DNA of 64,000 nucleotides from Glycera tridactyla (lineage: Eukaryota): positions 49,228,001 through 49,292,000 of the forward strand of contig OZ286466.1 of the NCBI GenBank assembly GCA_965644265.1. The letters are read 5' to 3'. The first letter of the stretch is position 1. The number at the start of each line of letters is the position of its first letter. The position numbers were made by a program, and so were the translations under genes. Below, piece by piece: positions 29,001-35,000 of this stretch. The notes beneath the pieces were generated by a model, which had not been told where the DNA came from, searched no databases, and saw nothing but the letters and a program-made list of their open reading frames with translations.

Positions 29001-32000
29001 GAGGCACAGGGATGTTTTTCCTATACGATGTCCTGATCACCATTGGCTTTACTTGGGTTATTCGCCGGTAGACGGCTTCTCCATGTGTTCCTAGTCATAC
29101 GTCACAAAATGGCGGCGGTCTCGAATGTAAATAAACAATGACGGAGCTTGATTTCGTGAATTTCGTTTTGGAATTATAATACTATGTGGCGATATTTCGC
29201 AGGGACGACTGGATATGTAGGTGTCAGGTAACCTATTGTATCAAATTAATTGAGAAAAACAGACGTTCATTTAGGCGTCGGTTCCACTTTAATTGAAAGA
29301 GATTTTCAAGTTTATTGAGGAACAAATTTAGTGAGTGACCTGGGAGTAAGCTCTGGGATCTTACCTTTGTGATGACATCCTTGAAGTGGCTCTCCTTCCA
29401 AGCATCAGTGGGATGACTGATCATTGTCAATATAGCGTTATCGTACTCTTCATACTTGTCATACAGGAATACCAACTCGGCCCACAAATGTGCTTGTTCT
29501 GCTGCACGCAACACCTAGGAACAGACAATCACAAAAACATCATTATTACACCTGCAGTGTTGCATCTAGGAATTGGTCAAGTTGGGCCAATTGGCCCCCT
29601 GTGATTCTCACATGGGGCCAATCGGGATTGAGGTGGGGCCAATATCGAAGGCATGCAAACATATTCGAAATACGTCATCAAAATGCACAAAAATGAGAAA
29701 AACCCACCAAAAGTAGTCATTTTCGAAAGATTCTTCGCTGCTTCCTGTCCCTCCACATGTCCACGCACTGGCCAAAAGGGAAACTTTCGATTTCAGGTCC
29801 CTCCAACTGAATCAGCATTAGCTTGTTCAACGTCGCTGGCTCCAATCTGTTGCGCTTGATGTTGTGCACATTGTTCTGAGCAGAAAATCCCCGCTCACAA
29901 TCTGCTGTATGCAGAGGGATGACTAGTGCAATTTGGGCAAGACGGATGAGGTTTGGGAAACTTTCACCATGATGGGTCTGTAAAATGTTCCACAGAACAG
30001 ATGTGCTGTCCCTCGGGTAACGCTGTTCCAACACCACCTTCTTCACCAAGGACCATTCAAATTTTGTCTCCACTGCACAGATGAGCGCCTCTGATTTGAC
30101 TGAGGTACGGGATTTCTTGTCTGACCCATAATGGTCAATAAGGATCTCAAGCTTGTCATTCCCATACTCAGCAACATCATCTTTGGAGAGGAATGACAAG
30201 CTGCGAAGGCCAAAAATTTCAAACGCTGTGGCAACATCAGTGGAAAGTTGTGGGAATCGTTTCGACATCGCCTCCTCCAAATTTGAACAAAATGAAGAAC
30301 GAATTTTCTTGAACTCATCCTTAGAACCAGATGATATGTGAACCTTGTGGGTCTTGTACAGAATGATATCCCCTTTTTTCACCAGATTGTCCTCCATGAC
30401 ACGCTGATAGTAGCTCTGTCCAGATACTGCTTTTTTGAGGACATCCGTAGCACCACTGATTGCAGGACGGACTGTGGCCACATCCAAATTCCTCTTCTGG
30501 AAGACCATAGACAGCTGGGCAAAGCTTGGAATCACATCCATCATGAGATGTAGCGTAGCTATGAAACGATAATCCACAAGAACTTTGTACAGATCTTTTG
30601 CAGCTTGTTGTTTGTCCGAATGTTCTTTGAAGTAGCTGACCAAGGATCTGTGGGACTTGTAAACTGCCTGAAGAGCATTGTAAAAGGAAAACCAGCGTAT
30701 CTCGTGCACTTCCTTCATGGTGACCTGTGGATCATCCAGAACTTTCTGCAGTTCTTGGAGTTGTAGTGTACGTGCGGTGGATTTACGAAAGTAGTAAAAT
30801 AAATCTGTCAGCGCTTTGTTGAATGTTTTACCGACATAATCCACATTGCTTGCGGCCTTCTCAGTACATAAATTCAACCGGTGTGCAAGACAGTGTACTG
30901 TGACACAATGGGGGCTTGCATCTTGCATTCTCACGCCAACTCCATTCTTCCGCCCTGTCATTATGCTCGCACCGTCACTGCCAAACCCCATCACCTTCTT
31001 CAAATCAACATTATGGTTGGCCAAGAATTCTGTGAGGTTACGATGGATGACTTCGGCTGTAACACTCACATCATATAGAGCAATATTTCCCAAGAAAACA
31101 GTTTTCGGTTCCATTTCATCAGAGATGATTCTGGCATATATAACTAATTTCTTCGTCACTTTGATGTCTGTGCTTTCATCAGTCATTATCGATAGAAACT
31201 TGGAGTTTTTCAGCTGTTCTTCTACGTCCCCCATTATCTTGTCGGCGATGACAGATTGGAACTCATCACCTGTTGCCCTTGAAGTGTACGTTGCATTTTT
31301 TCCTGTGCCGAGAGCCTCCAGTGATGGTACTTTTTCCAGTTTCATCAAGTTCATCAGTGATGGATACTTCGACGTGGGCATGCCCTCTTTCCCCAACCAA
31401 TAGACGCTACGCATACCTGTTGTTATGGCCCCTGACTGTTGCTGACATGCGTTGTCACTCGCCTGTGACATGTCAGTACGCAAAACAGACTCTTTTATCG
31501 CATTGACATGGTCGACGCTGTCTACGTGCCTTGAAAGCGTGCTGGTCCTGTAGTTTGAGCTGCCCTCTCCTTGGGTCAGAGCATTGTCCTTATTAGAATC
31601 CTTGCACAACCTGCATGTCATGCCCCCTTTGCCACCATTGGCACTACTGTCATGCACCAACCAATGGTACTGGTCCAACCATGCTTTCTGGAATCTGTGA
31701 TCAAACTTGGCCTTTTTTGTTGGGGGCTCTGACTTGCCTGACTTGTCCTTGTTGTTGTTGTTGTTGTCATTATCTTCAGTGACACCACCATCACCACATG
31801 TATTGACATCATCTTCATCATCATCAGTCCTGGGGTGCTTGAAAAATGCTGAGATTCTGAGCTGCTTAGACATGATTTCTTAACTATAACTTAACTATAG
31901 CATATGTGTCACTTAATAGTATTCACCGAATGACATTCACACTTCACGCTCGATTCACCATGCTCAACGCTCGACACGAGGCGCAGAAAACCGCGAACCC

Positions 32001-35000
32001 CATTCCAACTGACCGTCAGCAGTCGCTATTTGGCCATTAGAAATACGATCGCGAGAAACCGGGTTATCGGGTTTGGGGTATCAGAAACTGTGAGAACGCT
32101 TTTGCATCGCGGCCGCTGATTGGCCGAGAGCTGCCACTTTCGATTCCATTGGCCAATCAGAATCGAGATTACAGCGGGGCTTCGTCTCCGAACGCAGCCG
32201 GGCGATATTAGAGGAATCGCCAAAATGGCGATATTTCTTCTCATTTCTCCATCATAAATACCAATGATACAGGTTTCTGGCGCGGCCGATCGTTCAATTT
32301 GCGTGAGTTTTTCTATATTCGCGTATGGCTTGGCGCCCTAACCTTCCGATTTCGCGCCCAGTTGTCATTTATTCGCGTAAATCCCGCGCTCCCGCGGCCT
32401 GGATGCAACTCTGCACCTGCCTAGTGCTATCCCATAAAAAAATTTCAGCAAGTTATAGTATCCCTTTCAAATTTGTGGGTAAGAAATTTGAGGTGTATTA
32501 GTGTCCATGAGGAAATAATAGTTTACATTTGGAATTCACAGTTGGGGGTTTCTCTCACCCCCTCTGCCATTGAATCTTGATTGGAATAACACTAGATCAT
32601 TTTCCCTGTTCTTCGATGTATTACAGCAGCTAAGATGTTTGATACATCCTATGTGCCACTGAAAAAGGTAATAAACAAAACCTAAACCATTCTTGGGCAA
32701 ACAGTGGACCATCATGCAGCTCACCCATACTCAATTACCAGGGCAGCAGAAATTGACGTACGTACTCATGCATTGTCACTATCACCAATGATGAATGCTA
32801 GGCCATGGGTATCTGACCATCCCTTAAATATCACCATTCAGGATCCTAACTGGCTATGGATGGATTGATATGGAGCAGAAGAGTGGAATAGCTGAAATAT
32901 ACCAGTGGAATACTCACCTTTGGAATGTTTACTCGAGACCAGAAGAGTTCTAGATGTTCTCTCATCTTTTGTGGCTTGTATTTGGAATACAGAATAGCGA
33001 GCTCAGTGAACATACCCATATGTGCACGCTCAAGACCTGGAGGATTAAAATAGATCACAAATATAGTAAATCTTGTTGACAAAGACCACATGTGGTCATC
33101 GGATACTGTTGATTTTTTTTTTGTAAGATCACCTGTTGTAGAGAGGTAATGTATCAGTCAAATGACACAGATTTCTATTTATCATCTGTTAAATGTTGAA
33201 CCATGACAAGATATATTTCTTTCAGCAGTAAAACTGATGAAATATCAGCCACATCCAAGAATGTGAAGGTACATGTACATGGTAAAATATGACCTGAGAT
33301 GAGAGACTGTCACGAAGGATGGCAAAATAATACCCTACAACACAACTGCCCCTGCCCTTCCCCTTGGAGAAATATCCAACTCAGTTGAATGGAAATGGGC
33401 AACTTTCAAGACAGAGGATCTCTCATCAGGGGTTTGACTCTCATCTTAGCATCTACCATGGATAAGATTTGAAAGAAATCCTACCAAGAGCTGCCTCTAG
33501 GAGAGCTATGAGCTCCTCGAAGTATCCTCGTTCCTGATAATAATTTATGAGCTCTTCGAGTTCATCAGCATGTACCACGATGTGGAGACCGCACATCTGG
33601 GCCAGTCGGAACTCCTCGTTGTCAACACATGCGAAGCACACCTGCGGACGCAAAAATGAGCACCACTGAATGACTACAGAAACATGAAAAACAGACTATT
33701 GAAATTCGGTCGATGCATTTAGACAGAAATAATGATAACAGTCATGTAAAGTCATCGTAAAGATGTTTAGGAGATGTTCTATTTACCATATTCGCATTCA
33801 GAATAATTTGTGGATGGCTGAAATAAGTTTGACTTCCAACCCTGATAGTGCTTTGGAAGTATCTTGTTCTTACCGCCACATGTAAATAGACAATCATTAT
33901 CAATTAGATGAACTTATGGCACAAGAGTCTGATGATTTCTTGGAAGATTTTTGGTCAAAACATATCTTTGATGATTTCTTGGAAGATTTATAATATATTT
34001 CAAAGATATGTTTTGACCAAAAATCTGGAAGCACAGACACCAGCAGATCCAACGACTACATCTCGTCCCTATTCACAATTCTCATCTTTTCAACAAAGTT
34101 AGTTCTCAGAATGACAGTATTTGGAACAAGTACACCTTTTTCTGGTTTCTTGCTATTTTTTCCCATGCCTGTGATATCTGACATAATTAGTACATGTTAA
34201 ACTGTAGTAGAAGACTGAAATATCCCTGAAACTCACCTCCTTCCATGTCTTTGTAGAGTTGGCTTTGCGTGCACCATCAACAGCACCCTGATATTCTCCC
34301 AGATGAACTAATGTGATAGCAAGGCGAGCAAAGTTGGACACATTATTGTACAGCAGTTTTGCTGGCTCATACATCTTGTTGTCAAAGCAGCGATCAGCAA
34401 CCTGTGTGATATTTGCATGATTTGGTCCAGAGATGAATTCTTCGAGGTCAGCCAGACGGTTTGTCTTGGCATAGGCATAAACCAGCTCGGTTTCAATGAA
34501 GGTCTCTCGTGCCTTCTTCCTGGCCATCTGTAAGTATTTGACAAGGTCTTCCCAGCTATCTGAAAACACAAATGAATAATTAATGAGTAAGCTGCATGGT
34601 GGAGAGCTTGTGTGACCAAATTTTGGAATATGACCCAAATTAATAAGTGGGTGAATTTCATGCAGGTTGCGCAAATAACCAATTTGTTCAAGTAATGAAT
34701 TTGAAACTAGACTATCAAGTACTTCTGCAAAACAAATTTTCAAATAAACTACCCAAATCAAGGGCAAGCTGGCATTCGAGGCTTGTGTAATAATCCTTAT
34801 CCCACAGGAGGAAATTGGGCAAACAATCCTATACATCCAATTTGTGGTGTATTTATCTCCATCTACACAATACATATAGTATCCAGATTTGAACATAAAA
34901 CAGCCTGCTTCCTTCGAATTTGGACCAAAGAGCCCTGGCCACAACAGTAACATTGACCACTATGTCTGAGAAGTCCACCCTCTGCCTTATCAAAAAGTGG

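Follow-up and report, generated by a model that had tools for sequence, protein, structure and literature searches.

An intact hAT transposon with a 6-bp target-site duplication in a clathrin heavy-chain intron of Glycera tridactyla

The element and its setting

We analyzed a stretch of 64,000 nucleotides from the Glycera tridactyla genome (contig OZ286466.1 of assembly GCA_965644265.1; hereafter the window), which contains a DNA transposon of the hAT superfamily. The element occupies window positions 29555-32413 (2859 bp) and carries an uninterrupted 718-amino-acid (aa) frame on the minus strand. It is bounded by terminal inverted repeats (TIRs) of 16 bp that are complementary at 14 of 16 positions, and it is flanked on both sides by a 6-bp target-site duplication (TSD), a length that recurs among its relatives. 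A first-pass annotation made from the letters had described both the stop-free 718-aa open reading frame (ORF) and the 14/16 TIRs, and both descriptions hold at the positions given in Table 1.

Next to the left TIR lies a subterminal array of GGGGCCAAT motifs. Six matches to this motif occur in the window, against an expectation of 0.38, and every one falls inside either the hAT element or a miniature inverted-repeat transposable element (MITE) at 36197. We regard the array as a set of putative transposase-binding sites. Its position is kept in the window element's own family (family A), in a sister family (family B), in the old family to which the MITE belongs and in one relative from another assembly; it is likewise conserved in a family at 70% identity, where the motif reads GGGAGCCAA throughout, a concerted change. 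The hAT superfamily is characterised by short TIRs (about 10-25 bp) accompanied by subterminal repeats, and the window element has both.

Table 1. Features of the hAT element and its surroundings, in window positions
Feature	Position	Strand	Sequence or evidence
TSD, left copy	29549-29554		CACCTG; the same 6-mer adjoins the right TIR on its outside
Left TIR	29555-29570	+	CAGTGTTGCATCTAGG; end downstream of the transposase gene
Subterminal array	29587-29643		Three GGGGCCAAT motifs, the first within a palindrome with GGCCAATTGGCC core
Transposase ORF	29717-31873	-	718 aa, single exon, zero stops
hAT C-terminal dimerisation (hATC) domain	29807-29986	-	aa 630-689; PF05699, E 4.7e-11
Catalytic E660 (CERGFS), codon	29894-29896	-	Within the hATC domain
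Catalytic D300 (SDGA), codon	30974-30976	-	RNase-H-like core
Catalytic D232 (DESTD), codon	31178-31180	-	RNase-H-like core
N-terminal CCHH zinc finger, zf-C17orf113	31490-31666	-	aa 70-128; PF25431, E 4.6e-11
5' non-coding module	31915-32413	-	Right TIR to ~45 bp before the ATG; ATTGGCC/CCAAT-like boxes
Right TIR	32398-32413	+	CCTGGATGCAACTCTG
TSD, right copy	32414-32419		CACCTG
Clathrin heavy-chain exon, downstream	29233-29515	-	PF00637 (Clathrin), profile positions 78-129
Clathrin heavy-chain exon, upstream	32915-33040	-	End approximate; PF00637, profile positions 38-76
MITE of an older related family	36197-36819	+	Family-B-type TIR CAGAGCTGCATCCAGG, three GGGGCCAAT motifs

The ORF pieces on either side of the element match consecutive positions of the Clathrin profile, which places the element within a clathrin heavy-chain intron; element and gene share the strand. 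The intron spans 29516-32914, with its AG acceptor at 29516-29517 on the minus strand; the element contributes 2865 of its roughly 3400 bases.

Genomic copies and the length of the duplication

We searched the genome (2.04 Gb in 207 contigs, with the window at C18:49228001-49292000) at the DNA level and found six full-length copies, the window copy included. Four of the copies are 99.5-100% alike, the three closest ones differing from the window copy at 9, 13 and 14 positions (99.5-99.7% identity), and the other two are 97.7% and 96.2% identical to it. Judged by this divergence the family is young, because copies differ by only 0.3-0.5%, and it is from copy identity that we infer recent activity of the element. 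A 28-mer beginning with the left TIR occurs 170 times genome-wide, against 0 for a reversed control. Most of these left ends belong to internal-deletion derivatives of 0.5-0.9 kb, and about 160 short derivatives are present. Their ends are 97-99% identical to the window element, they are located elsewhere in the genome, and their classes join element positions 1-176 to 2361-2859, 1-189 to 2298-2859, 1-101 to 2314-2859 and 1-93 to 2435-2859.

The copies fix the ends of the element, and with them the length of the duplication. The first-pass annotation had reported an exact 6-bp CACCTG; the raw window sequence also permits a 7-base direct repeat, CACCTGC, which counts the element's first C, and an inverted repeat of 18 nt that extends into the flank. 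These readings leave room for an ordinary 8-bp hAT element whose ends have been placed a base too far outward at both termini, or for a chance match, which has a probability of 1/4096 per copy for six identical bases. All compared copies, however, start with CAG and finish with CTG beside unrelated flanks, and the duplication is therefore 6 bp. Among family A genomic copies with both ends, 14 of 16 have exactly 6 bp, one has 5 bp (CAAAG) and one has 7 bp (TGGACCA). A family A derivative in a polyA metatranscriptome contig carries TTTACA on both sides. The family total is a 6-bp duplication in 15 of 17 copies and an 8-bp duplication in none, and the same 6-bp pattern appears in four other families. 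Misdrawn ends or a coincidental match are consequently an explanation to which we attach next to no probability, and the annotated 6-bp TSD holds for the family as a whole.

The same tabulation was extended to relatives in this genome and in other assemblies. Family B (54% protein identity, 3189 bp, with the perfect TIR CAGAGCTGCATCCAGG) has the TSDs CTGGGA, CGGCAT and CATCAC. The family at 70% identity has GATAAA on one side and GATGAA on the other, matching at 5 of 6 bases, and a family at 37% identity (4633 bp, TIR CAGGGATATTCCTGGA) has TGCCTG and TACAGT. Among relatives from other assemblies, one at 42% identity (TIR CAGGGTTGCATCTAG) is flanked by CACCTT, one at 38% identity by CAAGAA and one at 46% identity (3870 bp) by the 5-bp TAATG. 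This last relative lies directly beside or within the pol gene of a long-terminal-repeat retrotransposon (RVT_1, RNase H and integrase domains). Two other copies of the old MITE family have GGCCTT and CTGCTG. We kept one further family, at 46% identity, out of this tabulation, its left end being clear and its right end ambiguous. No 8-bp duplication was present in any tabulated copy, across families and assemblies. The 6-bp length is thus characteristic of the clade and not an accident of the window copy.

The flanks also carry a target bias. Across 53 independent left flanks, C stands at TSD position 4 in 33, and G is absent from position 5; for 38 of the 53, the left flank alone was scored, and the later counts were read by eye from alignments. 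The resulting preference, NNNCHN, is asymmetric: positions 3 and 2 show no mirrored counterpart, and there is no TA core. A preference for G at position 6, apparent in the first copies (12 of 18), did not hold up in new ones (13 of 38) and was dropped.

Copy number and insertion sites also decide whether the frame might be a host gene. A domesticated gene of the ZNF862/C17orf113 type would be single-copy, syntenic and endowed with a cellular function, and the intact frame and the names of the closest annotated homologues, 'C17orf113-like' and 'ZNF862-like', are what such a gene would show. Against this, TIRs and a TSD enclose the frame, the whole lies within an intron of a different gene, and at least six full copies occupy unrelated sites with 6-bp duplications of their own, alongside the short derivatives. 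We consider domestication of this locus refuted by the copy number and by the TIR/TSD structure. The genome-wide copy search with TSD tabulation that the first-pass annotation had proposed was thus carried out, and the single-copy domesticated gene that it had named as the finding to overturn its reading was not what we found.

A further possibility is that the element is structurally intact yet silent or immobile, the family having ceased to move some time ago and the frame surviving only because decay has not yet had time to set in. In keeping with this, the 718-aa frame is complete in only two of the six full-length copies, the window copy and that at C34:12.79 Mb; the others have a lost start codon (C34:69.96 Mb), stops (one TAA in the C31 copy) or indels. 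The window copy, moreover, carries three private substitutions. The small divergence between copies points the other way, and open frames are also kept by several sister families. The ORFs of the two intact copies differ by one residue change (N40S) and three synonymous changes, which in this very small sample also speaks against an immobile family.

Read data from other samples bear on the same question. Of 21 runs listed, 14 contain part of the stretch; we examined four, all as contigs and with the library type mostly guessed. Contigs labelled organism A and organism B span the whole ORF with 3-4 differences each, and a run labelled organism C includes parts of the element at 97-100% identity. 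At positions 30809 and 31244, where the window copy is unlike most genomic copies, all three covering runs have the other letter. The depth profile of the contigs is compatible with low-coverage DNA or RNA. Neither insertion polymorphism nor transcription was demonstrated from these contig runs, which counts in favour of an immobile element; near-identical copies under other organism labels argue against one. On balance we think it unlikely, though by no means negligible, that the family has fallen silent. A 1196-nt polyA metatranscriptome contig labelled 'aquatic metagenome' contains a 518-bp family derivative that is flanked by a 6-bp TSD of its own and surrounded by other sequence, which shows that RNA-library contigs of environmental origin can include family members.

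Two further arrangements were observed in the genome search. At C1:159292570-159296803, a gap of ~1.7 kb divides one copy into element positions 376-1781 and 1776-2859, probably the result of a later insertion. At C26:49250089-49262665, ~37 kb upstream of an older full-length copy, three open frames of 766-772 aa stand ~5 kb apart on one strand, 28-29% identical to the transposase; they could be tandem distant hAT relatives or a domesticated gene array.

The transposase and related families

In the 718-aa protein, the zf-C17orf113 finger and the hAT dimerisation domain both pass the curated Pfam cut-offs, the latter (PF05699) with 42.8 bits against a cut-off of 21.4. A DUF4371 match over the catalytic core is sub-threshold in this protein (23.4 against 32.1 bits) and is recorded for homologues; a DUF659 match over the core is likewise sub-threshold. 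Residue conservation was scored in an alignment of 20 homologous proteins with identities down to 20%. H116, H122, D232, D236, D300, C328, H331 and E660 are invariant, and C87, C90, R393 and W394 are conserved in at least 90% of the homologues. The hAT superfamily motifs CxxH (C328xxH331) and RW (R393-W394) are both present. Of the motifs listed in the first-pass annotation, DESTD, SDGA, CxxH, RW and CERGFS are accordingly confirmed by the alignment, and the 'TTF zinc finger' is replaced by the zf-C17orf113 finger identified by Pfam.

In its predicted fold the protein matches Hermes, a house fly transposase (PDB 2BW3, 4D1Q, 6DWW and 8EDG). An AlphaFold2 model built on the homologue alignment has a mean predicted local distance difference test score of 84.4, with disorder limited to residues 1-56. 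In a Foldseek search, Hermes accounts for each of the ten best PDB matches (E 9e-13 to 1e-10, probability 1.00), with template-modelling scores of 0.55-0.66 normalised to the target (0.64-0.66 for the best match) over 550-580 aligned columns. In HMMER alignments, CERGFS matches Hermes SERTFS, SDGA matches Hermes TDRGA, and the hATC region matches Hermes residues 448-525. From its disordered N-terminus, which is acidic/basic, the protein continues through a BED-like CCHH finger and an RNase-H-like aspartate-aspartate-glutamate (DDE) core, split by an all-helical insertion domain, to the hATC region. The overall fold, the DDE triad, the CxxH motif, the tryptophan, the hATC region with its catalytic glutamate and the N-terminal BED-like finger are common to both proteins. 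They differ in that sequence identity is only 17-18%, the finger of the window protein belongs instead to the zf-C17orf113 family, and Hermes produces 8-bp duplications. Sequence, motifs and predicted fold together establish the protein as a member of the hAT superfamily. IS3EU elements, which also have 6-bp TSDs, were considered and rejected because the protein is Hermes-like and carries the hATC domain.

A word-based protein search returned 41 relatives of the transposase. Those with names include a 'C17orf113-like' protein of Ptychodera flava, a 'zinc finger protein 862-like' protein of Haliotis rubra and one Holothuria protein, and the precomputed domains of the relatives include PF27073 (FAM200-ZBED5 RNase-like) and PF27046 (FAM200-GTF2IRD2-like). 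The domain set of the homologues is the same as that of C17orf113/ZNF862-like and FAM200/ZBED5/GTF2IRD2-like proteins (PF25431, PF14291, PF27073, PF27046), a likeness drawn from invertebrate relatives that bear NCBI names after these genes and not from vertebrate sequences. The placement near ZNF862 in the first-pass annotation therefore agrees with the nearest named relatives, while its DUF4371 label falls below the cut-off in the protein itself. TIRs were not recognisable at the Ptychodera flava 'C17orf113-like' locus, and the exact 718-aa protein was absent from a collection of 15 billion proteins. Vertebrate C17orf113/ZNF862-type genes are regarded as domesticated and are not known to have TIRs; the window element, in contrast, is multi-copy and by all appearances mobile.

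Comparison with family B revealed a common 5' module. Families A and B are 96-98% identical over about 500-514 bp of non-coding sequence at this end, which extends from the TIR to ~45 bp before the ATG, and the same module is also common to MITE derivatives. Yet family B (an 827-aa frame) has a transposase only 54% identical to that of family A, and the 3' ends of the two families agree in nothing but the TIR and the array of motifs. The module has a sharp boundary, and its variants are mosaic among family A, family B and the MITEs. Such a pattern points to a recent exchange between two autonomous families, by recombination or conversion. In form, the right TIR of young A copies stands between that of older A copies and that of family B, and the imperfect TIR pair of these copies would be a consequence of such an exchange between A and B.

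The MITE at 36197 had been proposed as the non-autonomous partner of the window element, and this pairing does not survive comparison. The two are 82% identical over the first 50 bp and beyond that alignable only at motifs, whereas the MITE has a family of its own (~3000 first-look candidates) whose members, among the matches listed, are 85-89% identical to it. On this evidence the MITE is an older relative and not a deletion derivative of the window element. Its final two bases are mutated and no TSD remains in this MITE copy; the transposase of family A or B might still recognise the old MITE. At C28:27.78-27.82 Mb the old MITE family recurs eight times at a spacing of about 5.2 kb and is therefore part of a tandem array there.

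Proposed mechanism and place among hAT elements

Taking these data together, we consider it highly probable that the window contains an intact, autonomous hAT element recently inserted into a clathrin heavy-chain intron, in the orientation of the gene and with a 6-bp stagger. Several points weigh against this account. The 5-bp and 7-bp family copies and the 5-bp relative from another assembly raise the prospect that the stagger is not strictly fixed; these occasional lengths may be later mutations or real variation. The ORF-bearing contigs are of uncertain kind ('RNA?' being a guess), support for mobility is indirect and the four examined runs cover no intron flanks.

Hermes transposase binds the TIRs and subterminal repeats, nicks one strand, forms hairpins on the flanking DNA and inserts the 3'-OH ends at a fixed stagger. 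By analogy, the transposase of the window element would bind the 16-bp TIRs and the subterminal GGGGCCAAT repeats, nick one strand and excise the element via hairpins on the flanking DNA, with W394 and C328xxH331 as the conserved residues that would serve the hairpin and excision step. The two 3'-OH ends would then be joined to target strands 6 bp apart, where Hermes joins them 8 bp apart, and repair of the gaps would leave the 6-bp duplication. The roughly 160 short derivatives, which have the same ends, are probably mobilised as well, by the transposase of family A or by that of its sister family B.

The usual hAT duplication is 8 bp, with hAT5, hAT6 and hAT7 as accepted subgroups, the 7-bp group having been added in 2025 (PMC12730594). 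That source credits the names hAT5 and hAT6, for groups with 5-bp and 6-bp duplications, to Kapitonov and Jurka (Repbase Reports 7:1192, 2007). Its tree places hAT6-1_NV, hAT6-1_SP and hAT6-2_SP in a clade adjoining Blackjack-type animal hATs (PMC12730594). Like the window element, hAT6 elements combine a hAT-type transposase, a 6-bp TSD and marine invertebrate hosts, and by the operational definition of a hAT transposase with a 6-bp TSD alone the window element fits hAT6. The published record of this group is thin: we found one describing paper in the searchable open literature, with a passing remark only. Literature searches yielded no paper tying C17orf113 or ZNF862 relatives to 6-bp duplications and nothing on C17orf113 with hAT or on hAT-hAT6, and the ZNF862 papers were uninformative on transposon origin. 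No description of this family, its TIR CAGTGTTGCATCTAGG or its GGGGCCAAT subterminal repeats was found in the searchable literature. The first-pass view of 6-bp hATs as rare and little characterised thus agrees with the scant literature, although the group has been named since 2007 and the element does not open a new class.

Ac and Buster are hAT groups of Arensburger et al. 2011 (cited in PMC3942097). The window element shares with them the superfamily, short TIRs beginning with CAG and subterminal repeats. The TSD of Ac is 8 bp with the consensus nTnnnnAn, and that of Buster is 8 bp with the consensus nnnTAnnn. In the window element, a 6-bp duplication with the asymmetric NNNCHN bias stands in place of such an 8-bp palindromic consensus. 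It is a further member of a known, poorly documented 6-bp hAT group.

A broader proposal can be made, which we offer tentatively as possible but more doubtful than not. The entire zf-C17orf113/FAM200-ZBED5-type hAT clade, from which vertebrate C17orf113 and ZNF862 are named, may use a 6-bp stagger and the asymmetric NNNCHN target; the window copy and one other may still be active; and autonomous families may swap complete 5' ends, comprising TIR, binding sites and promoter, by recombination.

From the viewpoint of genome annotation, the element is otherwise unremarkable, a young DNA transposon within a housekeeping-gene intron. The parts of specialist value are the 6-bp stagger across the clade and the probable swapping of ends by different families. 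The locus provides a clean, young and intact example of a 6-bp hAT element with its own derivatives, and the 6-bp duplication is common to related families down to 37% protein identity and to relatives in other assemblies. Given a clade-wide 6-bp TSD, it becomes testable, by comparison of structure or activity with Hermes and its 8 bp, what in the transpososome sets the spacing of strand transfer. If it occurs, the exchange of 5' ends would put an existing stock of MITEs at the disposal of a new transposase.

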